Shown here: positions 1-44,701 of the stretch, piece after piece
How positions within the stretch are numbered: the stretch's first letter is position 1
How the letters are laid out: each line of letters opens with the position of its first letter
Assembly: GCA_965112735.1 (NCBI GenBank)
Contig: OZ218951.1
Coordinates: 5,890,001 to 5,954,000, forward strand
From: Phaeosaccion multiseriatum
Lineage: Eukaryota > Protista > Ochrophyta, other classes
DNA: 64,000 bases
Direction: 5' to 3'
Made by a program: the position numbers and the translations under genes
Notes under the pieces: generated by a model
Told to the model about the DNA's origin: nothing
Databases searched by the model: none
What the model saw: only the letters and a program-made list of their open reading frames with translations

Positions 1-83
1 GCTGACGAGAGGCAGATCCTTGCGTAGATGGTAGAAGAAGTATATCACGTGAAGTATATGGTGCTCATCTTCCTCTATCTTAC

Positions 84-3000
84 CGAGCAGGTACGGTCGT
101 TACCATCGCAGTCCACCTGTGAGCCTTCGAACTTGGATGGGTTTCCCGGTTCAGACTGTGGCAGGGTTAGCACGCAGGCAGGCAGGAGTGCACCAGCGGA
201 GCAACAAGAGGTGGTCAGCGGGACGTGAAGAAAGGGAGGATGCAGGGCGTGAGTCTCCAAGCACTACTACAAAGTCAGTGAAAGCCGTTCCACCCATCCA
301 CGAAGGCCGAAGAGAGGTCAGAGATGGGGAGTCTTAGAAGAAGTACATGCATCTCCGTCTTCCTTACCTGGCAGGACCCTACACCAATGCAACCAACCAC
401 TGAATCGAGAGACATGATGCCCTGTTCAAATGCAAGCAGCAGGAGTGCAAGTGGAGCAAGAGGTGGCCAGAGGGACGTGAAGAAAGTGACGATGCAGGGC
501 GTGAGTCTCCAAGCACTATAAAGTAAGTGAAAGCCGTTCCACCCATCCACGAAGGCCGAAGAGACGTCAGAGGTGGGGTAGTCTTAGTAGAAGAAGTACA
601 TGCATGTCCGCCTTCCTTACCAGGCAGGATTGTGGACCAGTGCAAGCGCTGACACCGGCTGTCTGTGTGTTGGAGACACTGGCTCTCTGTGCGCACGCAG
701 GCAGGCAGGAGTGCACCAGTGGAGCAACAAGAGGTGACCAGAGGGACGTGAAGAAGGGGAGGATGCAGGGCGTGAGTCTCCAAGCACTACTACAAAGTCA
801 GTCAAAGCCGTTCCACCCACCCACAAAGGCCGAAGAGAGGTCAGAGGTGGGGTAGTCTTAGTAGAAGAAGTACATGCAGCCATGTCCGTCTTCCTTACCT
901 CGCAGGAACCTGGACCAACGCAAAGCAGATCTGAATCGTCAGACGTGATGTCCTGTTCAAATGCACGCAGCAGGAGTACAAGTGGAGCAAGAGGTGGCCA
1001 GAGGGACGAAAAGAAAGGGAGGATGCAGGGCGTGAGTCTCCAAGCACTATAAACACCCGTCGGTGAAAGCCGTTCCACCCATCCACGAAGGCCGAAGAGA
1101 GGTCAGAGGTGGGGTAGTCTTAGTAGAAGAAGTATATGCATGTCCGTCTTCCTTACCTCGCAGGAATCTGGACCACGGCAAACCACATCTGAAGCGGTAG
1201 ACGTGATGTCCTGTTCAAATGCAAGCAGCAGGAGTACAAGTGGAGCAAGAGGTGGCCAGACGCGAAGAAAAGGAGGATGTTGGGCCTGAGTCTCCGAGAG
1301 AAAGCAGCACACTATGTGAGTAAAAGCCGTACGACGCGAACTACTACTATCATGATCTGCCTCTCAAGGCGATCCGCCATGATTCACTCCCCCCCCCTCT
1401 TTTCCTTCCGTACCGAGCAGGAATCTGATGCGGAGCATTCCGCCCTTGATTGCGAGGTCAACTCAACACCCTGTGTGCAAGCAGGCAGGCAGTTGTGCAC
1501 CAGAGGAGCAACAAGAGGAGGCCAGAGGGACGTGAAGAAAAGGAGCATGCAGGGCGTGAGTCTCCGAGAAAACGAACTTTAAACACGAAGTGAAAGCCGA
1601 ACCAGAGATTGGTGTACTGTGGGGAAGAGTGTACTGTGGGGAAGAGTGGTCAGAGGTGAGGTGTGTGTTACGGTGTCTCCGGGGTGTCGCTCCCCTGACG
1701 GGGGCGAACGGCAGCTTGACTCAAGGGGAAGCAGATGCTTATAACTAGGCTGTTGTCCGCCTTTCTTACCGGGCAGGCGTCCGCAGCAGCGCAGAGCGCA
1801 GTTGCATCCGAGTCAAACGTGGAGTCCTGTTCAAAGGCACGCAGTAGGAGCGAAAGCAAGTGGAGCAACAAGTTTTTGGATGTGAACAAAAGGAGCAGGA
1901 GACTCAGGGCGAGAAGCCAAGCAGTAGACTACTGGCAGCCGGTATGAGCGAGAGCGAAAGCACTACCGGGCGATCTAAAGCAGATGTGCCGCTCAGTACG
2001 ACCCATGCAGGACCCCGGCGGCATGCAACAATACACAAGTGGAAGGAGATGCTTCGAGAACTTGCCTTGCAACAATTCACAAGATCGGCGTTGCAATTAG
2101 CCTGGTGGTGTGGGCAGAGAGAGGAGAGGATGAAAAGGAGGGGGCAGCCAGCAAGCGAGGAGGAGGCAGCGAGCAGGTCAGGCACGTCAGAAGGGGTGCC
2201 AGTGTAAAACAGCAACGCAGGCCAAGTCGTGGGGACCGAGGAGACAGAAAACCAGAAAGATTAGCTGCACGTGCCACCACAAGCCATGATAATGATACGC
2301 ATGACGAAGCTGAAAGAGGAAGCACTAGGGAAGGAAAGCAAGGCCAAGTAGTAGCTAACCTCCCCCTTCCTTCGGGAGAAAACACACAAGGGGAAGCAAG
2401 AGGACTGGGGAAGACTCTACAAGGACCATGACATGTCAATGGGGAAACAAGAACAGATAGGAGTAGAGGATGGAGGAGAGAGAGGATGAGGCCAACAAAA
2501 TAGCAGCAGCAGCAGACAGCAAGGATGGAGAGGACGTCATGAACAGACCCGAGAAAGCCGCCCCTCCCTCACTTCCCACGACGTACCTGTGCACATGGAT
2601 TGATGCATGACTTCGCTCGAGGTGGTCAGAGAGCAGCCACAGCCGCCGCCGGGGAGAGAGAGGAGCGGAGAAGAAGGCGGGGCGCGAGCAAGCAAGGAGG
2701 GGCGAGGGGTAGAGGGTGCCGGTGGATAGTAGCAAGCCAACAACAGGCAGGGAGAAGGAGACAGAACGTGAGAAAGGGCTGCGCGCTGCTCGTGCCTCGT
2801 GCGGCAATGGTGTTCATGACGGAGAGGCAAAAGTGAGCAAATAAAGCAAGGCCACGCTAGGCCAGCAAGCCGTGAGCCCCCCCATTTGGTTTTGGAGACA
2901 ATCTCGGTCCCCATCCCAGCCAAGGGCAACCAATAGGAGGGCGCACAGTTAGTGGTGGGCGAGGAAGACAAGAGGTAGAAAAGAAGAGGGGAACTGAGGA

Positions 3001-5577
3001 GTGCGCACAGCAGACGGGAGCGGCCCGAACGAATGACAGAGAGAGTAAGACCAACACCACAGCAGCAGCATCACCAGGAGCAGCAGGCAGGAGGAGGAGG
3101 AAGAAGATAGGATGCCATGAACAAGCTTAAGACATCTGTCCCTCTCCCAGCCAATTGAGGACGTACTCTGAGACACTCTTCCAGCTCCGGTCCAGACTCA
3201 ATCAGGAACGCGCAATCCTTCGCTCGAGGTGGTAGGGACCACGCACGGCCACCGGCGGGCAGAGAGAGGAGAAGAAAGGAGCAAGAAGGAGGGCAAAAAG
3301 CGAGGAGTGCGACGGGGAGGAGGGTCAGTAGATAACAGCAAGCCAAGTGGCTGGCGGGGACGAGGAGACAGCCAGAACATGTGTAAGAAAGCAAGGGCTG
3401 CTGCTCGTGCCAGCACAATGGTATTCACGACGGAGAGGAAAGATTGAGGAAGCAAGCAAGGTCAACGAAGCGAGACGATGTCATCCCGATGCCCATCCCA
3501 AAGGCAAGCACGCAAGAGAGGCGAGGGAGAAACTGCTAGTACATGTGAGATGAATATGAGAAGATGAGAAGAGGAGGAGGAAGGAGGAGTGAGCACAAGA
3601 GACGGAAGCGGCCGAACGATAGGGCAAGCAAGGAGGGTGAGGCCAAGAACACAGCAGCAGCAACAACAGTAATTGGAGAGTACAAGCCCAGGACATCTTT
3701 CCCTCTCCTTGGTTACTAACCGGAAAACAAGTACCCACGCATCCCTTCGCTCGAGGTGGTGAGACAGCACAGCCGCGGGCGGGCAGAGAGGGGAGAGGAG
3801 AAAGACGGGGACGGGCGAGCGAGGCGGAGCGAGGGGGGGGGACGGTGCCAGTCAAGAACAGCAGGCCAAGTGGCTGGCGCGGAGTGCTGCTCGCGCCGCA
3901 ATGGTGTTCATGACGAGCGGAAAGAGTGAGCAAATAAGAAAGCAAGGCAAGCAAGGCCAAGAAGTAGAATCTTCGGGGGAGGGGGAGACAATCTCGTGCC
4001 CAGCCATCCCAAGAACAAGTAGTAAGCAAGAGGATGGAGCGTGAGGACAACAACGCAGCTGCAGAAGCAGTAGCAGTAGCAGCAGCAGCAGCAGCAGCAA
4101 GAATGGGCTGTAGAGGTCATGAACAGGCCCCGAGAAATCTGTCCCTCTCCCCCACTGCCCTGAGCTACGACGTACAGTCACACAGTCCGGGCATGCCTTC
4201 GCTCGAGGTGGTCAGAGAGCAGCCACGGCCGCCGGCGGGGAGAGAGAGGAGCGGAGAAGAAGGCGGGGGGCGAGCAAGCGAGGAGGAGCGAGGGGTGGAG
4301 GGTGCCAGTGGATTGCAGTCAGCAAGCCAAGCGGCAGGGACAAGGACACAGAACGTGAGAAAGGGCTGCTGCTCGTGTGGCAGCCAATGGTGTTTATGGC
4401 GGAGAGGAAAGAGCGAGCCAACAAGCAAGGCAAGCAAGGCCAAGTATGAACAAGCCCATGAAGAGAAGACAAGCATTCACGGTCACGTCACCATCCAAGC
4501 AGGGCATGCAGCAAGAGGAAGGTGAGGCCAACAACAAAGCAGCCAGCAGCAGCAGAAAGAATGGAGAGGACGTCATGAACAGGCCTGAGAAATCTCCCTC
4601 GCCCGCTGCCCTGTGCTACGACCCACCTGATTCCCAGTAGGACACTCCGCGCACATCTTCGCTCGAGGTGGTGGGAGAGCACGGCCGGCGGCACCAGGCA
4701 GAGAAAGGAGCGAGAGGAACAGGAAAAAGGGGGGCGGGGCAAGCGAGGAGGAGCGAGAGGGGGGCGGGCGGGGGGGAGGGCAGTGGGACGGCAAGCCAAG
4801 AGGCGGGGAGGGAGGAGACAGAACATTAGGATGAGCTGGCTGCTGCAAGTGCCACCACTTGCACAAAGCAATGATCATCCATGAGAGAGCGAGGCCCGAG
4901 CTGAAAGCCAACATACCAGGCAGCAGCCCAGCAGCGGCAGCACCAGGCAAGCAAGAAGGGACAGGATTAACAGGCCCGAAGCAAAATCTGTTCCCCGGCA
5001 CTCTCCCTCGCCTCACTTCCGCCCCAGCTGGTGCTACTGTGACGTACCTGTGAACAATCAATATCCGAAGTACACACCTTCGCCGGCGGCCACCAGGCAC
5101 AGAGAAGAGAGGACCAACCAAGGAGGGGGGGGAAGGAGGAGTAAGCCAGCCAGGCAGCAAGGCAGCGGGCGCAAGAAGTAGCAGCCAAGGCCAAGCAAGA
5201 CGCAACAACCAAACGCTGGGGTTGTTTGTGGAGGTCAGACACTCTCGCCCCCAGCCAACAAGGACACGCAAGAGGAGGGGCAATGGTGCGGCTGCGCCCA
5301 GCAGCCCGCTCTCCTTCACTTACTTCTCCAGAAAAGATGGTCCTCTGGGTGAGCACAGGCATGCAGCCAGGCAGGAGCCAAGGAGACGGAAGAGCAGGCA
5401 GGAAGGAGGAGAGAGGGGAATGTCAACAACATCATCAGCCGCAGCAGTATTGCAGCAGAAATGCATTTAGAACCCCCCCCCAAGTGGTGCTTAACGTACC
5501 GGTAAGACAGCAGGGCAATCGGGAGTGGCAGTTGCCGACGTCCAGAAGGAGAGCAGGATGGCTACAGTCAGCTTCAT
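84..5577 (-). CDS. Secreted Cys-rich protein encoded by a micro-exon gene (at least 16 exons; 3' end runs off the window start)
   Basis: Minus-strand exons: 5577-5500 MKLTVAILLSFWTSATATPDCPAVLP (signal peptide); 5344-5324 RTIFSGE; 5077-5048 VCTSDIDCSQ; 4656-4627 MCAECPTGNQ; 4196-4176 ACPDCVT; 3744-3721 GCVGTCFP; 3217-3167 DCAFLIESGPELEECLR; 2610-2587 SCINPCAQ; 2101-2066 ANCNADLVNCCK (GC donor); 1826-1770 DSTFDSDATALCAAADACP; 1470-1414 GVELTSQSRAECSASDSCS; 1210-1157 DITSTASDVVCRGPDSCE; 952-899 DITSDDSDLLCVGPGSCE; 686-621 RASVSNTQTAGVSACTGPQSCL; 421-368 GIMSLDSVVGCIGVGSCQ; 155-84 SEPGNPSKFEGSQVDCDGNDRTCS. Every internal exon is bounded by AG and GT (one GC), has a length divisible by 3 and contains no stop; 243 aa in total. 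Confidence 0.85.
156..2065 (-). repeat. Intron repeat family A of the micro-exon gene (7 related introns, ~200-300 nt)
   Basis: Plus-strand blocks GATGCAGGGCGTGAGTCTCCAAGCACTA (~240, 491, 763, 1022) and AAAGCCGTTCCACCCATCCACGAAGGCCGAAGAGAGGTCAGAG... recur with a ~250-270 bp period. Most copies start GTAAG on the minus strand. Confidence 0.85.
2102..5323 (-). repeat. Intron repeat family B of the micro-exon gene (degenerate, ~250-560 nt)
   Basis: A shared acceptor end ACCACCTCGAGCGAAG| (plus strand CTTCGCTCGAGGTGGT) occurs at 2611, 3218, 3745, 4197 and 4657, with a variant at 5078. Internal blocks are also shared (CATGAACAG.CC, GACAGAACGTGAGAAAGGGCTG, CAATGGTGTTCATGAC). Confidence 0.8.
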
Positions 5578-5649
5578 CTTTGCGTTGCTATTATTGTAGC
5601 TAAGAAAGTGAGGAGAGACCTGCATGATTCTCGCACTCCCGCTGTTGTG

Positions 5650-6202
5650 GACTTTTCGCCAGGGTAGGGTATGCACTTTCAAAAAGTGCCAACACGGCAT
5701 GGGTAGGGGGGTATGCCGCCCACAGGGCGCGAGAAGGTAGCGGCGCGGTATGGAGGTATGCACCTGCACTAGCATGCCCACACCCGCACACCTCTGCACC
5801 GCCCCCTTGCTTTGCCCCTCCATGTGCCCCCCCCCCAAGTCCTCTCTATCTCTCCCCATCTTCCTCGCTCGTGGTCTCTGCCCCTCTCTCCTGGCCGCAC
5901 CCTGCCCCCCTTGCTCCCACCCTCCTCGGTCGACCCCCCTCTGTCTCTCTCCCTCCCATCTCTCGGCTGCTGTGTCTGCGTCTATCCATTGGCCCTCGCT
6001 CCCCGGACCGAGGCATCACCTACCGTGGCCACTGTCGGTGGTATCGCGGCAGCGGGAACATCTTTGTGAGGGGAACCGGGATTTGAGCACGCGGGTATGG
6101 AGGTATGCTGTACCAAGGGCCCCCGATTGGGACACAGGGGCAGGGGGGTATGCCATTTTGACCCCCTTGCTGAAAGTGCATACCCTACCCTGGCGAAAAG
6201 TC
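5650..6202. mobile_element. MITE-like non-autonomous element with a perfect 32-bp inverted repeat
   Basis: GACTTTTCGCCAGGGTAGGGTATGCACTTTCA (5650-5681) is the exact reverse complement of 6171-6202. Internal direct repeats GGTATGGAGGTATGC and GGGGGGTATGCC are present. There is no coding capacity and no TSD was identified. Confidence 0.6.
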
Positions 6203-35900: not shown

Positions 35901-38900
35901 TTCCCCTCCTGTAGTGCTGCCCCGGGTCTGTCGGTCAAACGCAGCACGTCCTTGACGCGCATGGTGGTGGTACGGTCGGCGTCGTCCCCGTCCTCGCCAG
36001 CGCTGCGAACAAGGGCCACGTACTCGCCCCCCGTGAGGAGCATCCCGAGCTGCTTCAGACAAACCCTCGTGAGCGCGTCCCTGTCCAATGTGTGTGTGTG
36101 TGTGGCCCTCCGCTCGCCACCCCGGCTCGCCGAGACTAGTACGGCCTTCAGCGCCTTCACCGCCGCCTTTCCGTCTTTACCCCTACCGTCTTGTCCGTCC
36201 GCCCCCTCTTCTTCTCCTCCTGCTGCTGGCCGTTGCAGTAGCTTCAAACTCAAATTCAGCTGTCGACCGGCCTTGTCGCAGGAGTGCTCGGCGTCCATAC
36301 CCGTACACACCCACGCTGCAAACATGGAATAGTTCACTCGCGCCGCTCCCCCTCCTCCTTCCGCTCCGAAGGCCTCCATGAGCACTTTCGCGTCCTTGCT
36401 GTTGAGCTTCATTCCGAGGCTTTCGCACGTCTTGCGGAAGGCCTTCTCGGGCAGGAAGGATGTGCGCTTGCTGAGGCCTGTGGCTTCCGCCTCGGCCTCG
36501 TGCATGGCCTCCGACACGAGCGCGTGGTGGGTGGTGCTGGTGCTGGTGCTGGTGCTGGTGCTGCCCATGTGACTGCCGCTGCTCTGCTTCATCTTCTTGG
36601 AGCGGGCAGAGGCGGCCTTGAGCAGCTGCGCCGACATCTGTGAGCGGGGGGGGGGGGAGGGGAGTGCGCCCATGCGTGCATATGTGAAAACGCCACAGAG
36701 AGAGATGGATAGAGGAAGAAGAACTTAGGGAGGGAGACAGGAGGAAAGGGATGTTCCGGGTCTGACGTGAATGTGTTCTCGCAAGGACGCATCCCCCCAC
36801 TCTGCCATCACGTGTGACTGACCCACCTGCCCCCAGAGCTTGTCCATCCCCTCGAGCTTGGCCGAGTGTGCCGCCACCAGCAGGCTGTGCAAGTCGCCCC
36901 AGCCAAAGCCGCCACCTGCTGTCAGGACCTTCTTTCTCTTCTTCTTCTTGTCGTGGTCCCTGTTGGGCTGCTCTCCGACCCAACCAGAGGTGGGAGGCGA
37001 AGCCGAGGCCCTGAGTCTCCACAGTAACGCCGCGTCTTGTGCCGTAAAGACGTTCCTCCTCCGCCCACCCTCGGCAGCGGCCCCGCCCTTCTGCAGCACC
37101 TTGAGGAGGTGGCTGCGGGTTTCCAGTTCGCCATCCTCGTCCGCCTCTGAGGCGAAGGCCTTGCTGAGCCTCCCCTTTTGCACCTCCACTGCGGCGAGCC
37201 GGGCCAGCTTCTTGCGGAGCGCGGAGGACGCTAACTGTTGTTGCTCCTGTAGCACCAGTCGCTTCTTCCGCTTGCCGTCTCCGGAGTCGCTACTGCCGCT
37301 GCCGTCACTACTGAAGTTGTCCTCGGTGGAATCCTCGTCCTCGTCTCCGCTGCTGCTACTGTCGCTACTGCCCCCTCTGCGGCGGCTTCCTTCTCGTCTC
37401 CGGCGGGAGGGCGACGAGGAGGGGGACTTGTTCTTACCGCGCGAGAAAGGGCTCCGCAGCCTGTCCAAAGCGCTCTTCTTCCTTCCTTTGCCCCCCCCCC
37501 CCCCCGCCCTATGGCGCCGAGAACTATCGCCGTGTGGGTCGTCGTCTTCGTCGCTGCGGGATGCATCACTGTCCCCGCCCGAGGAGGAAGAGGAGGAGGA
37601 GGGGACCCTCTTCCCCTTGTCCCTGCCCCTACCTCTGTCTCTGCTGCTGCCCGTCTGGACCAAGCGAAGCAGCTTGTCTACGCTCACCATGCCTCGCCCG
37701 TCCCCAACACTCCTCGACACCGCCCGCAGCTGCGACGTCGAAGGGGCGGGGAGACGAAACTTGACGCACACTTTGCTCAGATTGGGATCGCTCAGCACAG
37801 CCCTCTGTGACCCCCTGCCCTCTGCGTATCCCTCGAGGTACCTTCGGAGATCCGAGGGGGACTTTCTGTAACGCTCGAGAGCCCCCGCCAGGGCCTCTGC
37901 CAGCCGAAGCGCCACTTTCTTGTCCGTCTTGTCCTCTTCTGTCTCGCCCTCCTCCTCCCTTCCCCCTCTTATGTTTCTCGTGCTGCCCGTCCTGCGCGGA
38001 CTGCGACTGCCCCCACCGCGACCACTGCGACCACCGCCTCTGCCGTCGTCGGACAAGGATGCTTCCGAGGAGTGGCGTTCATGAGCGCCAGGGTCGGGCC
38101 TGCGCTGCTGACTCGAGCCGGAGGGGGAGAGTCTGCGAGGAGTATGCGTCGCCTCGGAGTCCCTCGGGCGCACCCACCGGGGCTCCACCCTCACCTCCAC
38201 GGCCCCGCTACCGCTGCACTTGACGTCGTACGAGCCATCGCGATGCACCACGCTCACGCGCCCACTCACCCACTCCTGGGCCCCTCTACTCCTCCCGCTG
38301 CGTCCTGACACCTGCACCTGCACCTTGTCTCCCACCTGGAAGTGCTCCTGCGGTAGCTCCACCTCCGACTCCCCTCCGCTCGCCTGCCCCTGTCGCCCCC
38401 GTCCACTGCCGTCCGCCTGGCTCCTGCTCGCCTTCCTCACCCACCTCTTGTCCATCCTCTCCTCCCTCTCGCCTGTCGCATCATAAGTAAGGTCTAGGGT
38501 CCCATCTCTGTGGATGCCCGACACCTTACCAGGTGTCCACCTTCCCCGGCCCCTTCGGTTGCCTTCCACACGATCGCCCAGCCGTAAAGGAACTTCCTCC
38601 TCCACTTCAGACACGACCGAATCATTTCGTGGGTGTCCTCGAGTCGGTTTCCCCCCCCCCCTACCATCCCCAGCCTTCTTCCTCACCATGTCCCTCTCCA
38701 TCGCTCGGTCCTCGTCACCATCGTCATAGCGTACGTGAAGCGTGCCGTCTCTGTTCTTTCGCATGACTGTACCCTTGTACCAGCGGCCCTTACCCTTGTA
38801 GTTGGCCTCCACAGGGTCACCTACGTCCAGCTCCGCCTCTGCCTCTGAGTCATCAGCGTATCGACTGCGCTGAGGAGACTTCGGCCGAGCAGCCGCTCCT

Positions 38901-41900
38901 CCCCTCTTCCTCACCATGTTCCTCTCCATCGCGCGGTCCTCGTCACCATCATCATAGCGTACATGAAGCGTGCCGTCTCTGTTCTTTCGCATGACTGTAC
39001 CCTTGTACCAGCGGCCCTTACCCTTGTAGTTGGCCTCCACAGGGTCACCTACGTCCAGCTCCGCCTCTGCCTCTGAGTCGTCCGCGTGACGAGACTTCGG
39101 CCGAGCAGCCGCTCCTCCCCTCTTCCTCACCATGTTCCTCTCCATCGCTCGGTCCTCGTCACCATCATCATAGCGTACGTGAAGCGTGCCGTCTCTGTTC
39201 TTTCGCATGACTGTACCCTTGTACCAGCGGCCCTTACCCTTGTAGTTGGCCTCCACAGGGTCACCTACGTCCAGCTCCGCCTCTGCCTCTGAGTCGTCCG
39301 CGTGACGAGACTTCGGCCGAGCAGCCGCTCCTCCCCTCTTCCTCACCATGTTCCTCTCCATCGCGCGGTCCTCGTCACCATCATCATAGCGTACATGAAG
39401 CGTGCCGTCTCTGTTCTTTCGCATGATTGTACCCTTGTACCAGCGGCCCTTGCCCTTGTAGTTGGCCTCCACAGGGTCACCTACGTCCAGCTCCGCCTCT
39501 GCCTCTGAGTCATCAACGTATCGACTGCGCTGAGGAGACTTCGGCCGAGCAGCCGCTCCTCCCCTCTTCCTCACCATGTCCCTCTCCATCGCGCGGTCCT
39601 CGTCACCATCATCGTAGCGTACGTGAAGCGTGCCGTCTCTGTTCTTTCGCATGACTGTACCCTTGTACCAGCGGCCCTTGCCCTTGTAGTTGGCCTCCAC
39701 AGGGTCACCTACGTCCAGCTCCGCCTCTGCCTCTGAGTCGTCCGCGTGACGAGACTTCGGCCGAGCAGCCGCTCCTCCCCTCTTCCTCACCATGCTCCTC
39801 TCCATCGCTCGGTCCTCGTCACCATCATCATAGCGTACGTGAAGCGTGCCGTCTCTGTTCTTTCGCATGACTGTACCCTTGTACCAGCGGCCCTTACCCT
39901 TGTAGTTGGCCTCCACAGGGTCACCTATGTCCAGCTCCGCCTCTGCCTCTGAGTCGTCCGCGTGACGAGACTTCGACCGAGCAGCCGCTCCTCCCCTCTT
40001 CCTCACCATGTTCCTCTCCATCGCTCGGTCCTCGTCACCATCATCATAGCGTACGTGAAGCGTGCCGTCTCTGTTCTTTCGCATGACTGTACCCTTGTAC
40101 CAGCGGCCCTTGCCCTTGTAGTTGGCCTCCACAGGGTCACCTACGTCCAGCTCCGCCTCTGCCTCTGAGTCGTCCGCGTGACGAGACTTCGGCCGAGCAG
40201 CCGCTCCTCCCCTCTTCCTCACCATGTTCCTCTCCATCGCGCGGTCCTCGTCACCATCATCGTAGCGTACGTGAAGCGTGCCGTCTCTGTTCTTTCGCAT
40301 GACTGTACCCTTGTACCAGCGGCCCTTGCCCTTGTAGTTGGCCTCCACAGGGTCACCTACGTCCAGCTCCGCCTCTGCCTCTGAGTCGTCCGCGTGACGA
40401 GACTTCGGCCGAGCAGCCGCTCCTCCCCTCTTCCTCACCATGCTCCTCTCCATCGCTCGGTCCTCGTCACCATCATCATAGCGTACATGAAGCGTGCCGT
40501 CTCTGTTCTTTCGCATGACTGTACCCTTGTACCAGCGGCCCTTGCCCTTGTAGTTGGCCTCCACAGGGTCACCTACGTCCAGCTCCGCCTCTGCCTCTGA
40601 GTCGTCCGCGTGACGAGACTTCGGCCGAGCAGCCGCTCCTCCCCTCTTCCTCACCATGTTCCTCTCCATCGCTCGGTCCTCGTCACCATCATCATAGCGT
40701 ACATAAAGCGTGCCGTCTCTGTTCTTTCGCATGATTGTACCCTTGTACCAGCGGCCCTTGCCCTTGTAGTTGGCCTCCACAGGGTCACCTACGTCCAGCT
40801 CCGCCTCTGCCTCTGAGTCATCAGCGTATCGACTGCGCTGAGGAGACTTCGGCCGAGCAGCCGCTCCTCCCCTCTTCCTCACCATGTCCCTCTCCATCGC
40901 TCGGTCCTCGTCACCATCATCATAGCGTACGTGAAGCGTGCCGTCTCTGTTCTTTCGCATGACTGTACCCTTGTACCAGCGGCCCTTACCCTTGTAGTTG
41001 GCCTCCACAGGGTCACCTACGTCCAGCTCCGCCTCTGCCTCTGAGTCGTCCGCGTGACGAGACTTCGGCCGAGCAGCCGCTCCTCCCCTCTTCCTCACCA
41101 TGTTCCTCTCCATCGCTCGGTCCTCGTCACCATCATCATAGCGTACATGAAGCGTGCCGTCTCTGTTCTTTCGCATGACTGTACCCTTGTACCAGCGGCC
41201 CTTGCCCTTGTAGTTGGCCTCCACAGGGTCACCTACGTCCAGCTCCGCCTCTGCCTCTGAGTCGTCCGCGTGACGAGACTTCGGCCGAGCAGCCGCTCCT
41301 CCCCTCTTCCTCACCATGTTCCTCTCCATCGCTCGGTCCTCGTCACCATCATCATAGCGTACATGAAGCGTGCCGTCTCTGTTCTTTCGCATGACTGTAC
41401 CCTTGTACCAGCGGCCCTTACCCTTGTAGTTGGCCTCCACAGGGTCACCTACGTCCAGCTCCGCCTCTGCCTCTGAGTCATCAGCGTATCGACTGCGCTG
41501 AGGAGACTTCGGCCGAGCAGCCGCTCCTCCCCTCTTCCTTACCATGTTCCTCTCCATCGCGCGGTCCTCGTCACCATCATCGTAGCGTACATGAAGCGTG
41601 CCGTCTCTGTTCTTTCGCATGACTGTACCCTTGTACCAGCGGCCCTTGCCCTTGTAGTTGGCCTCCACAGGGTCACCTACGTCCAGCTCCGCCTCTGCCT
41701 CTGAGTCGTCCGCGTGACGAGACTTCGGCCGAGCAGCCGCTCCTCCCCTCTTCCTCACCATGTTCCTCTCCATCGCTCGGTCCTCGTCACCATCATCATA
41801 GCATACATGAAGCGTGCCGTCTCTGTTCTTTCGCATGACTGTACCCTTGTACCAGCGGCCCTTACCCTTGTAGTTGGCCTCCACAGGGTCACCTGCGTCC

Positions 41901-44701
41901 AGCTCCGCCTCTGCCTCTGAGTCATCAGCGTATCGACTGCGCTGAGGAGACTTCGGCCGAGCAGCCGCTCCTCCCCTCTTCCTCACCATGTCCCTCTCCA
42001 TCGCGCGGTCCTCGTCACCATCATCGTAGCGTACATGAAGCGTGCCGTCTCTGTTCTTTCGCATGACTGTACCCTTGTACCAGCGGCCCTTGCCCTTGTA
42101 GTTGGCCTCCACAGGGTCACCTACGTCCAGCTCCGCCTCTGCCTCTGAGTCATCAGCGTATCGACTGCGCTGAGGAGACTTCGGCCGAGCAGCCGCTCCT
42201 CCCCTCTTCCTCACCATGTCCCTCTCCATCGCTCGGTCCTCGTCACCATCGTCATAGCGTACGTGAAGCGTGCCGTCTCTGTTCTTTCGCATGACTGTAC
42301 CCTTATACCAGCGGCCCTTGCCCTTGTAGTTGGCCTCCACAGGGTCACCTACGTCCAGCTCCGCCTCTGCCTCTGAGTCATCAGCGTATCGACTGCGCTG
42401 AGGAGACTTCGGCCGAGCAGCCGCTCCTCCCCTCTTCCTCACCATGTCCCTCTCCATCGCGCGGTCCTCGTCACCATCATCATAGCGTACATGAAGCGTG
42501 CCGTCTCTGTTCTTTCGCATGACTGTACCCTTGTACCAGCGGCCCTTGCCCTTGTAGTTGGCCTCCACAGGGTCACCTACGTCCAGCTCCGCCTCTGCCT
42601 CTGAGTCGTCTCGTGTCCTTACTGATGAAGGCCGAACAGGGCCTCTGCCCACGCTCCTCATGCACGCGGGTCGGACGCTCTCCTCGCGTTCGCCGTCGTC
42701 ATACGCAATGTCGTAGGTGCCATTTCGGTTGGCCCTGGCGACTTTGCCGGAGTACCACTTGCTGTGACCCCTGTACCTAGCCTCCACCTTCTGCCCCACA
42801 CGGAAGGTGTCTCCGCCGCCACCCAAGTCGGATGAGGCCGCGGATTGCAGAGAGTCACAACTGGCGGCACCGGCCGAGCCCTCCATGCCTAAAGGGGGGT
42901 ATGAGGAGGATGAGGGGATTAGGAGGCGAAGATGGAGCATTGGGGACGGGTGTTGTTGCTAGGCTTCGGCGACGACAAAGGTGCAGAATGGTGTATGGTG
43001 GCGGAGGGCATGCAAGGGCGAGGATGGGCAGGCGAAGAACACCAAATGGACAGTAGCATAGCATGGTACCAAATGGACAGTAGCATAGCATGGTACCAAA
43101 TGGACAGTAGCATAGCATGGTACCAAATGGACAGTAGCATAGCATGGTACCAAATGGACAGTAGCATAGCATGGTACCAAATGGGCAGTAGCATGGTGGA
43201 CAGTAGCATGGTGGCTTCGCCAATGCGCATACATACCACACCCATACCGCCCAGGCCATCTTCAGGACAGAGGCATGTCCTGACACCCCTTACCCACCTG
43301 AGATGACCCTTCTCCCCGGCGACTTGGGCTTCTCGGGGCCCAACAAGCTCCCTGAGCTGGACGTGCCATTGAGAGCCCTCATGAGGCCCGCTGACACGCC
43401 CCTCTCGGCCTCTCCGTCGTCGTAGATAATGTCATACGTCCCGTCTCGGTTCTTATCGGAAACCTTTCCCTTGTACCAACGGGATCGGCCCCGATACTGC
43501 GCCTCGATGGCGTCTCCCACCCGGAAGTGCCCAAGGCGCACTATGTCGGCGTCTGAATCGTCTGTTGTCGCCGCTGACCGCCCGTCCCCGCCCGCGGCCC
43601 GAATGTTGCTGGGCTTAACTCCCCTCTCCTCTTCTCCGTCGTCATATCGAATGGTATAGTCTCCGAATCTGTCTGGGCGGTCAGCTATCCTGCCCGGGAG
43701 CCACCTGCCCCGGCCTTTGTACTTGGCCTCGACCTTCTGCCCCACTCGAAAGCTCTCACTCGCCCCTCCCCCACCCCTGGGCTCGCTGCTAACATGCATC
43801 CGAGTGGAGAGAAGCAGCAGCCAAGGCAAGTCCAGTCAGGTCAAGTCAACAGCATATCGGCAGGAGGAGGCCAGCAGAGAGGCGGGTTGGGGTAGGGGAG
43901 GGGAAGGGGGTAGGGGCGGGCGGAGACACATGAGGGACCGAGCGGAGGGGAAGCGGCTGGACTAACGCTTGGTGTCAGGATGGATGGACTCACGCTTTGC
44001 TGCCGGGGCTGTCGCGATCCCTGAACGAGCTCTTGGGGGGTGCGGCTCTGTAGCTGCCCGAGTCATCAGCCGCCGCCCTGCCGCTCGACCCCCTTCGGAG
44101 CCCGCCCGTGGGGCTGGTGCTGAGCCCTCTCCCGCGAGGGCTGTCCTCAAGGGTCCTGGAGCCGGGGCGAGGGCGCGAAGGAGAGGGGGCTTTGGCGTCG
44201 ATGCTTCCCGCCCTTTGGCGGTTGGCGGCAAGAACAGGCGAAAGGGGGGGGGGGGGGGAGAGGGAGGAGAGAGGGACATGGTCAGGGTGCCAGGTCCTAT
44301 CTACGGGCAGTCTCAACACCAAAGCCGAAAGGCAGATAGCTCACAGGGGGGGACGGGGAATGGCGCCATCTTAGACTGCTCCTGTTGGAGATGGAGATGG
44401 GGGGAAGGAAGGATAGGCGGGGGAGAATGCCCCATGGCCTACCAAGCCTGCCCGCCCCGTTCCCACCCGTCTCTCCCCTCCCCTGATAGAATCCTAGCCC
44501 GCTGCCTTGTACACGCAAAAAAAAGGCATTTCCCGCCTGACTGGCGTACCTCGGGGGACGTCCTCTCGCGGAGCTTGGCCCTGCCGCCTTGGCCTCGGCT
44601 CCGGCGCTGGAGGCGGCCGCGCGGAAGCGAGACATGGGTCTGGGTCTGCCCCCAGACCGACTGCTGGGGCCCATATCGAACTCCAATACATCACCCCCCA
44701 T
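26401..44701 (-). CDS. NPHP1: Giant nephrocystin-1-like protein: 23 Tudor/Agenet-like repeats, multiple EF-hands and the NPHP1 C-terminal domain (~20 exons)
   Basis: The C-terminal exons match the NPHP1 domain as recalled: GMP.NYR.SVL...LLQP...L.LADL; [11 protein letters not shown]; FLGN...WTF; LLELT; [11 protein letters not shown]; LHGGTPF; LP..I; YR; [16 protein letters not shown]; [10 protein letters not shown]-hands include [47 protein letters not shown]|VEWVEF and DSDDSGTL. Same-strand exons form an unbroken chain; the single-transcript model is inferred. Confidence 0.72.
28902..29487. repeat. Intronic 21-bp minisatellite (~22 copies) followed by (CAGT)n
   Basis: Unit TGGTGTCAGACAGGCAGTCAT spans 28902-~29370; (CAGT)n spans ~29395-29487. 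Confidence 0.95.
30058..30197. repeat. Intronic 36-bp tandem repeat (~4 copies)
   Basis: Unit GGATGATGGATCAACAATAAAAGCATCTGTCTGCAG. Confidence 0.9.
33906..34153. repeat. Intronic ~53-bp tandem repeat (~4.5 copies) built from GTCAAGC subunits
   Basis: GTCAAGCGGATGTCAAGCATTAGAAGTCAAGCCTTCAAGGTTAAGCATTAGAG-like units start near 33906, 33959, 34012 and 34065. Confidence 0.85.
38680..42610 (-). repeat. Coding tandem array of 18 near-identical Tudor-like units (216 or 228 bp)
   Basis: The marker ACAGGGTCACCT occurs at 38811, 39039, 39255 ... 42339, 42567. The unit is [46 protein letters not shown] with short (SRHADD) or long ([10 protein letters not shown]) linkers. Confidence 0.97.
43042..43210. 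repeat. Intronic 27-bp tandem repeat (5 full copies plus a degenerate tail)
   Basis: Unit CCAAATGGACAGTAGCATAGCATGGTA. Confidence 0.95.

Follow-up and report, generated by a model that had tools for sequence, protein, structure and literature searches.

Mosaic introns and diverging cysteine-clasped exons in a predicted micro-exon gene of Phaeosaccion multiseriatum

Layout of the predicted gene

In the stretch of 64,000 nucleotides analysed here (the window; assembly GCA_965112735.1, contig OZ218951.1, positions 5,890,001 to 5,954,000), positions 84-2101 carry, on the minus strand, eight phase-0 micro-exons of 36-72 nt with a C-x5/6-C motif, separated by introns with GT/GC-AG boundaries. Judged from the sequence, this region is the middle of one unannotated gene for a predicted secreted cysteine-repeat protein: a putative signal peptide comes first, then around 30 phase-0 micro-exons, each of which would code for a single short loop clasped by cysteines, and at the C-terminus a domain with a predicted VWD fold. 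The putative exon 1 is located at 5494..5577 of the same strand, where a start codon and a hydrophobic, signal-peptide-like amino-terminus precede a GTACGT donor; it represents the last 28 residues of the open reading frame at 5491-5859, and the signal peptide was judged by eye. At the other end, the array runs on past the start of the window, with 14 more exons after exon 16. Units of one exon plus one intron are repeated in tandem within the gene with a period of 258, 21 of them in a row, and all 21 consecutive AG/GT-bounded segments are in frame, open and contain C-x5/6-C. These predicted exons are all symmetric, in phase 0, so skipping would keep the frame; the intron lengths are not multiples of three, read-through of one would shift the frame, and the spacers contain frame-breaking indels. 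We infer that the predicted segments are spliced.

Following the minus strand, exon 9 (2066..2101) is a 36-nt open frame with C-x6-C-C, predicted to extend from a CAG acceptor to an AAG/GCAAGT donor whose position is homologous to that of the GTAAGT donors in downstream introns. Intron 9 (1827..2065, 239 nt, GC-AG, with its GC donor at 2065) retains an ancestral central block and ends in a GAACAG-type tail. Exon 10 (1770..1826, 57 nt, 19 residues) is a G-type cassette; intron 10 (1471..1769, 299 nt) combines a CACAG-type tail with a long 5' body that resembles the ancestral one and contains a 17-nt tandem duplication. Exon 11 (1414..1470, 57 nt, 19 residues) is a C-type cassette, and intron 11 (1211..1413, 203 nt) has a 5' body of its own and a GAACAG-type tail, 93% identical to that of intron 12. 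The next four introns share the body that we call family A, which is joined to a GAACAG tail in intron 12 (953..1156, 204 nt) and intron 14 (422..620, 199 nt), and to a CACAG tail in intron 13 (687..898, 212 nt) and intron 15 (156..367, 212 nt), the last with an 8-nt insertion before the acceptor. Exons 12 (1157..1210), 13 (899..952) and 15 (368..421) are G-type cassettes of 54 nt and 18 residues, exon 13 having 85% nucleotide identity to exon 12 and 72% to exon 15. Exon 14 (621..686, 66 nt, 22 residues) is a C-type cassette with an in-frame alternative acceptor 24 nt downstream, and exon 16 (84..155) is 72 nt long and encodes 24 residues. Exons 11 and 16 likewise have in-frame alternative acceptors. 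Exons 10 to 15 each end in C-x5-C-x and exon 16 in C-x6-C-x; all seven are open and multiples of three in length.

The C-terminal 354 amino acids were modelled with a pLDDT of 77.8. The model matches VWD domains with Z-scores of 10-13.3 and rmsd values of 2.6-3.8 over 124-153 residues, the best being MUC5B (Z 13.3), VWF (Z 13.0) and FCGBP (Z 12.5); the 19 top structural matches all contain a VWD domain, and the next match has a Z-score of 6.3. The modelled C-terminal module is thus predicted to have the VWD beta-sandwich fold, which it would share with mucins, VWF, FCGBP, RGM and vitellogenin, although Pfam gave no VWD match for it, only a sub-threshold coiled-coil match. Foldseek alone gave no significant match for the C-terminal model. 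Where the GDPH autocleavage motif would stand, the sequence is SDPV here and GDP(L/I/V) in homologues. The model also carries an inserted helical bundle. A word search for relatives of the C-terminal open reading frame found none within its length range, and a full HMMER search found 99 distant relatives (37-40% identity), none with micro-exon repeats. Four close paralogues of the C-terminal domain have no C-x5/6-C micro-exon array in the 10 kb upstream of them.

Two tail types and mosaic introns

All introns of the array share homology. Only introns 12 to 15 are alike from end to end, with 92-95% identity overall and 95-97% in the first ~90 nt; introns 9, 10 and 11 share only the last ~95 nt with other introns (85-93%), their 5' parts being structurally different. 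The exact blocks shared by introns 12 to 15 are 38-47 nt long, whereas no two exons share one of more than 12 nt. The earlier note on this DNA had described introns of 199-212 nt with long near-identical blocks; the length range applies to five of the seven, introns 9 and 10 being longer, and the near-identity to the family-A introns, but not to introns 9 to 11 beyond their 3' ends. It had also proposed two interleaved acceptor types, and its assignment proved exact: GAACAG stands before exons 10, 12, 13 and 15, CACAG before exons 11, 14 and 16.

Introns 12 to 15 share a derived 5' body, marked by one common deletion of ~100 nt and a novel segment. Their last ~45 nt split into two old types, both of which are present on introns with other bodies: GAACAG also on introns 9 and 11, CACAG also on introns 10 and 16 to 21, such that all four combinations of body and tail are found. 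Among introns 12 to 15, the 13 columns supporting the split all lie in alignment columns 105-111 and 174-218, while the 34 other variable events, singletons included, are distributed evenly; the maximum chi-square test places the breakpoint at columns 164/174 (p=0.0017 by permutation). All informative sites among these four introns are compatible and support the single split ((12,14),(13,15)), so compatibility-type recombination tests on the four alone are uninformative and the mosaic rests on spatial clustering, on indels and on comparison with the other introns. The earlier note had expected mosaic introns with incongruent trees for their two halves. In the tree of the 5' part, introns 12 to 15 form a clade (support 80/87) and a clade of G-type introns is rejected (AU p=0.024); in that of the 3' part, intron 12 groups with introns 11 and 14 (74/89) and intron 15 with introns 10 and 13 (66/88), but when the 3' 100 nt are used, the converse hypothesis, a clade of introns 12 to 15, survives the AU test (p=0.27). 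The mosaic of two older intron types in introns 12 to 15 is real, and the sequence comparisons support exchange within introns. A two-unit repeat is visible in the array, with an intron identity of 94%.

Divergence of the exons

Exons of 18-24 residues with C-x5/6-C, as the earlier note had them, are what the minus-strand exon map contains. The note's statement that they share little else is true of exons 11, 14 and 16, whose parts before the cysteines match no other exon and are unalignable, but not of the exons that follow G-type tails: exons 10, 12, 13 and 15 are still recognisably alike in this part (z 3-7.6, except z 1.5 for exons 10 and 15). Exon identity is at best 70-85%. Exons 14 and 16 sit in duplicated blocks that are otherwise 94% identical, yet are wholly unalignable; a genome-wide search for second copies matched only the exons themselves, and Pfam scans of each gave no match. 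Such total dissimilarity is beyond point substitution under selection; the exons would have to be older, to have been replaced, or to lie at a duplication boundary that coincides with the acceptor. As exons 11, 14 and 16 are unalignable and exons 14 and 16 are single-copy in the genome, a shuffling of cassettes finds no support in them.

Exons 13 and 15 differ by 27.8%, against 5.2% in their flanking introns (p=1.6e-6), and exons 12 and 15 by 29.6% against 7.6% (p=2.9e-5); for exons 12 and 13 the difference from their introns is not significant (p=0.13), so that the excess of exon over intron divergence expected in the earlier note was significant in two of these pairs but not in the third. 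All eight nucleotide differences between exons 12 and 13 are non-synonymous. In the three G units, 18 of 54 exonic sites vary, compared with 33 of 196 intronic sites (p=0.012), the exonic ones being distributed 6/9/3 over the codon positions, with the third varying least. Intron tails of the G units are 96-98% identical and the adjoining exons, with their loops, 67-83%, the drop coinciding with the splice sites. For the array as a whole, intron divergence is 0.062; pN is higher (0.143; p=2e-6) and pooled pS, at 0.088, is similar (p=0.21), but pN and pS do not differ significantly (p=0.23). The ratio of transitions to transversions is 14:38 in exons versus 126:119 in introns (p=0.0013). Diversifying pressure on the exons, also put forward in the earlier note, is thus plausible but not proven: the exons have diverged more than the introns, mostly by amino-acid changes, but pN is not significantly different from pS.

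History of the array

The account that we consider probable, with considerable doubt left, combines duplication of units, misaligned recombination sited in introns and fast change of the loops under selection. The array would have grown via tandem duplication of exon-plus-intron units, introns 9 to 29 all being derived from one ancestral intron of ~310 nt. In exons 12 to 15 the repeating unit would reach from mid-intron to mid-intron, comprising the last ~45-110 nt of one intron, the exon and ~100-170 nt at the start of the following intron. Recombination between misaligned copies, by unequal crossover or gene conversion, may have been resolved inside the long similar introns, with the result that four exons in a row came to be followed by the same derived intron body, regardless of the type of flanking tail and exon cassette, and that hybrid introns were produced. 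Given the difference in length between the identity blocks of introns and exons, introns are the likely sites of exchange. Duplication of a single unit (258 nt) and then of two units (~525 nt) would yield the order G C G G C G C; one exchange and one two-unit duplication are enough for the interleaving. Of the earlier note's proposal that unequal crossover or gene conversion shuffles cassettes, exchange within introns is thus retained and repeated shuffling is dispensable. After duplication, the loop-coding parts of the exons would have gained amino-acid changes 2-5 times faster than the neighbouring introns changed, retaining a scaffold of Cys, Gly and Ser. Selection for varied surface loops is the most likely cause, although not a proven one; we infer both this positive selection and the mechanism of exchange.

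Duplication might also have been the only process, family-A units arising by simple tandem duplications in which tails were inherited with their exons and unlike units exchanged nothing. The visible two-unit repeat, the fit of all informative sites in introns 12 to 15 to one split and the non-significant AU test on the 3' part are as such a history would have them. It is nevertheless improbable: the internal branch is zero over the first 100 columns and columns 112-173 but long over the final 45 (p=0.002), a G-type clade is rejected by the AU test on the 5' part, and the presence of the family-A body on both tail types, and of both tails on other bodies, demands either parallel complex indels or one exchange or more. 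The four family-A bodies form a star, so a burst of duplication and ongoing homogenisation would leave them indistinguishable. Unlikely, if less so, is that the exons are old and the introns young without diversifying selection, the divergence of the cassettes being ancient, with constraint no more than ordinary or else relaxed, and gene conversion overwriting only the introns and the Cys-clasp part, its tracts stopping at heterologous loop DNA. The short identity blocks of exons would block heteroduplex extension, exons 11, 14 and 16 lack detectable similarity before the cysteines despite flanking introns that are 89-95% identical, and pN and pS are not significantly different, all in keeping with old exons. 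Such exons would, however, require a pS far higher than the one found in the alignable exons, which matches intron divergence; the drop in identity of the G units at the splice sites and the low variation at third codon positions also argue against them.

It would be still less probable than a history of duplications alone that the introns are alike because they are functional and under purifying selection, as splicing enhancers for micro-exon definition, through selector/docking pairing or as carriers of an intron-borne RNA. The ~95-nt 3' block with its invariant core is retained in 13 introns across the array, including units with unrelated exons, and the symmetric exons would permit in-frame skipping; on the other hand, an Rfam scan of window positions 1-6000 matched no family, the predicted folds of introns 12 and 13 are less stable than those of shuffled sequences (z +1.5 and +1.7), folding six introns together revealed almost no covariation and no stable structure, singletons are evenly spread along the introns, and intron divergence equals synonymous divergence. 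Scarcely credible is that there is no gene at all, the repeats forming a 258-bp satellite that codes for nothing, or the introns having been copied from a mobile element of the introner kind. The stretch is unannotated and its repeat part has no homologue, but the unbroken series of open, cysteine-spaced segments between spacers with frame-breaking indels, the exon with a signal-peptide-like start upstream on the same strand and the VWD-fold open reading frame downstream speak for a gene. Introner-like elements would be expected in many unrelated genes; the intron core motif has 13 matches in the 67-Mb genome, all 13 inside this gene, which also means that the likeness of the introns is not due to chance, and a DNA search with the intron sequence gave matches at this locus only. 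Two metagenome scans, one by protein and one by intron motif, were both without matches.

Flag introns are said to have been found more homogenised than exons by Hayashi and Lewis in 2000. Within a given spider silk gene (flagelliform; Argiope MaSp2, PMC9779670), the introns are 94-99.7% alike and belong to a family private to that gene; some MaSp2 genes have two alternating intron types, with a repeated unit of two exons and two introns, and unequal crossover in introns has been proposed as the mechanism. The array resembles them in its tandem exon-plus-intron units within one gene, its gene-private intron family and introns more than ~90% alike, here introns 12 to 15. It differs in that only these four introns are fully alike, and in that silk exons are large, of low complexity and homogenised too; here, the exons are diverging Cys-clasped micro-exons of 54-72 nt that are not homogenised together with the introns. 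Schistosoma micro-exon genes (MEGs, PMC10526429) encode secreted products in many short symmetric exons (3-81 bp) of high variability, comparable to the phase-0 exons of 36-72 nt found here, whose product may also be secreted, given the signal-like amino-terminus of exon 1. However, MEG introns are long (up to 5 kb), with no homogenised tandem family reported, and there is no sequence relationship; variation in MEGs comes from alternative splicing.

Conotoxins and snake PLA2 combine conserved non-coding or pre-pro regions with a hypervariable mature peptide on a Cys framework. The array shares with venom and defence peptides a retained Cys scaffold, inter-Cys loops that change fast and mostly non-synonymously, and adjoining non-coding DNA that is more conserved; theirs is a variation between paralogous genes or species, here it is between repeats within one gene. 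Mussel MgCRP-I genes, as outlined in PMC4558851, are another venom/defence-type example of conserved regions with a hypervariable Cys-framework peptide. No toxin function is suggested for the array gene. In the HMA4 model, in the outline given in bioRxiv 10.1101/2025.10.29.685298, interlocus conversion homogenises some segments of tandem paralogues and selection keeps others apart, resulting in a mosaic of identity; the units in that outline are whole-gene paralogues, in contrast to the 260-nt exon-intron units here.

The pattern is what recombination between repeats, together with selection for varied protein loops, would be expected to leave behind, and spider-silk and toxin genes are known to show it. 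It is improbable that the gene is a built-in diversification device, in which look-alike introns are kept as substrates for recombination and splicing and symmetric phase-0 loop cassettes can be duplicated, deleted, exchanged or skipped at high frequency; were it so, many variants of the surface protein could coexist in a population, or even within a single cell line, and the alga would possess its own equivalent of micro-exon genes or variable receptors. Genes of this kind escape standard annotation, since their exons are too short to be detected by homology. The stretch offers, at base resolution, a view of how an exon-per-repeat gene may evolve, with introns as exchange points, hybrid introns as their record and adjoining loops that change faster than neutral DNA. 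The pattern of iterated, homogenised introns described in spider silks would come to include a protist, in which the exons diverge instead of being homogenised; if the gene is expressed, its product would be a candidate for a variable adhesion or surface protein in a marine alga.

Organization of the predicted micro-exon gene

Scanning of the reverse complement for open, AG- and GT-bounded segments with spaced cysteines revealed an unbroken exon array on the minus strand of the window (G000:C2:5890001-5954000). The predicted exons E10 (window 1826-1770) and E11 (1470-1414) are 57 nt long, E12 (1210-1157), E13 (952-899) and E15 (421-368) 54 nt, E14 (686-621) 66 nt and E16 (155-84) 72 nt. All are in phase 0, with C-x5-C-x at the exon end in E10-E15 and C-x6-C-x in E16. 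The introns I9-I15, each named after the exon it follows, measure 239, 299, 203, 204, 212, 199 and 212 nt; unlike the exon lengths, these are not multiples of three, and read-through of an intron shifts the cysteine frame. This is strong indirect evidence that the predicted array is a real spliced gene, which we take as likely. I9 is apparently of the GC-AG type (AAG|GCAAGT, window 2060-2066, minus strand), its donor aligning with the downstream GTAAGT donors, and in I10 a 17-nt sequence is perfectly duplicated in tandem (2.2 copies, window 1612-1648).

Fourteen further exons of the same kind lie to the left of the window, reaching window coordinate -5284, and after the last of them the array runs into a C-terminal open reading frame of 390 codons (L011:5179-6348, minus strand; L011 is the stretch left of the window start). 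Upstream, at window 2102-5577 (minus strand), the exons are still shorter (21-51 nt, with CxxC or C-x3-C motifs), each preceded by a conserved CGAGCGAAG acceptor, and the introns form a second family of about 450-610 nt, purine-rich on the plus strand. A start-codon exon encoding a signal-peptide-like N-terminus lies at window 5577 on the minus strand and would be the first of the gene. An open reading frame with an NDUFS7/PSST-type motif of respiratory complex I adjoins the 3' end of the gene (L011:438-1109, plus strand, some 11 kb beyond the left end of the window). The window also contains a 2071-codon open reading frame (36725-42940, minus strand) in which a 216-nt repeat recurs about 18 times with 95% identity and a higher-order period of 444 nt.

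The C-terminal open reading frame has at least 30 paralogous loci scattered across the genome. A search of 1.8 billion representative proteins yielded 99 distant relatives, in which the module is C-terminal, behind subtilase, gametolysin-like or carbohydrate-binding domains. Pfam detected no VWD domain in the open reading frame, and Foldseek alone gave no significant match for its predicted model (pLDDT 77.8). The model matches the VWD domains of MUC5B, VWF, FCGBP, MUC2 and RGM with Z values of 10-13.3, the next fold scoring far below. Four close paralogues of the module lack the micro-exon array, so the array appears to be specific to this gene. On another contig (G000:C5:705066-732700), three VWD-like C-terminal modules are arranged in tandem, about 13.2 kb apart; in the six-frame match all three have the same pair of in-frame stop codons (one TGA, one TAG), a pattern that a small intron or a pseudogenising change common to the copies could explain.

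Mosaic introns and the order of the array

The intron ends fall into two interleaved acceptor types, as the earlier note had reported: GAACAG (G tail) before exons 10, 12, 13 and 15, and CCTGCCTG...CACAG (C tail) before exons 11, 14 and 16. The homogeneity it described holds over the full length for I12-I15, which are 92-95% identical (95-97% in the first 90 nt or so) and have exact common blocks of 38-47 nt. I9, I10 and I11 resemble them in the last 95 nt or so only (85-93%), their 5' parts having another structure. Alignment of all 21 introns of the array traces them back to a single ancestral intron some 310 nt long, from which the derived body of I12-I15 departs by a novel segment and one common loss of about 100 nt. 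All 13 occurrences of the conserved intron core in the 67-Mb genome fall inside this gene, and a DNA search with window 1-1500 matched this locus only; a dispersed mobile element is therefore ruled out. Nothing supports retention of the likeness through a functional RNA encoded in the introns: Rfam gave no match, folding z-scores were +1.5 and +1.7, and covariation was negligible. Constraint as splicing signals may act on the invariant core.

Among I12-I15, all informative columns back a single split (I12 and I14 against I13 and I15) and occupy only columns 105-111 and 174-218 of the alignment; singletons are evenly distributed along the introns. A max-chi2 scan with permuted labels places a breakpoint between columns 164 and 174 (p=0.0017). 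The first 170 nt or so thus coalesce as a star, and the last 45 nt or so fall into two deep lineages. As both tails recur on other bodies (G at I9 and I11; C at I10 and I16-I21), all four combinations of body and tail exist. The tree of the 5' part unites I12-I15 (80/87), and there the AU test rejects a grouping of the G-tail introns (p=0.024). In the tree of the last 100 nt, I12 goes with I11 and I14 (74/89), and I15 with I10 and I13 (66/88). That stretch does not reject I12-I15 as a clade (p=0.27), since its strongest characters are indels, of which the likelihood model takes no account. The proposed mosaic structure is thus borne out, and at least one exchange within an intron, or within the 3' third of an exon, is needed.

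Repeated shuffling of cassettes, also proposed, is not required for the interleaving: G C G G C G C follows from one single-unit duplication (E12/E13, period 258) and one two-unit duplication of about 525 nt (I12-E13-I13 versus I14-E15-I15, introns about 94% identical). Tail type goes together with exon class, so the natural repeating unit extends from mid-intron to mid-intron. In their pre-Cys parts, the four exons that follow G tails still resemble one another (z 3-7.6, but 1.5 for E10/E15), while those behind C tails match nothing in the exon comparison; the claim that exons share little beyond C-x5/6-C therefore applies to the C-type exons. The part of the exon encoding the Cys clasp falls within the homogenised tract (71-88% identity), and the variable zone consists of the 30-45 nt of loop-coding sequence right after the acceptor.

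Divergence of the exons

Exons diverge more than their flanking introns for E13/E15 (27.8% versus 5.2%, p=1.6e-6) and E12/E15 (29.6% versus 7.6%, p=2.9e-5), as the earlier note had observed; for E12/E13 the values are 14.8% and 8.2% (p=0.13). Across the three G units, 18 of 54 exon sites and 33 of 196 intron sites are variable (p=0.012), with 6, 9 and 3 variable sites at the three codon positions, third positions being least variable. Their intron tails are 96-98% identical up to the acceptor, falling to 67-83% beyond it. E12 and E13 differ by eight non-synonymous and no synonymous changes.

Pooling seven independent exon pairs from the whole array gave a pN of 0.143, a pS of 0.088 and an intron divergence of 0.062. 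For diversifying pressure, the excess of pN over intron divergence is clear (p=2e-6), but that over pS is not significant (p=0.23). Exons older than their introns, bypassed by intron conversion, are possible for the C-type cassettes but disfavoured for the G-type, since synonymous divergence is in line with intron divergence (pooled p=0.21 for a difference). The values fit a scenario in which the units duplicated recently and their loops then changed faster at the amino-acid level, though the exons are too short to prove this formally. Paired exons also have 14 transitions to 38 transversions, against 126 to 119 in flanking introns (window -5284 to 1826, p=0.0013), a bias that may stem from selection favouring radical amino-acid replacements or from a difference in mutational input.

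E14 and E16 are unalignable and of unequal length, though the introns around them belong to blocks about 94% identical, and searches of the 67-Mb genome found no other copy of either. Point substitution cannot account for this; the acceptor must have migrated or coincided with a duplication boundary, or the exons must have been replaced. Use of another in-frame acceptor, 24 nt downstream, would shorten E14 to 662-621 and E16 to 131-84, and one 9 nt downstream would shorten E11 to 1461-1414 (all minus strand). A CACAG intron-tail copy closes the first 24 nt of E14, which suggests that migration of the acceptor, or alternative use of 3' splice sites, alters loop length.

Relation to known gene families

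The observation in the earlier note is confirmed and its interpretation partly supported. In conotoxins and PLA2, conserved non-coding sequence lies beside hypervariable Cys-framework peptides. Other venom and defence genes have the same arrangement (PMC4558851), and schistosome micro-exon genes have short symmetric exons encoding secreted variable proteins (PMC10526429). In Argiope MaSp2 and flagelliform silk genes, iterated introns are homogenised within the gene, private to it and sometimes of two alternating types, with unequal crossover in introns as the proposed cause (PMC9779670). In contrast to these silk, micro-exon and venom or defence genes, the algal gene unites homogenised hybrid introns with diverging one-loop micro-exons.
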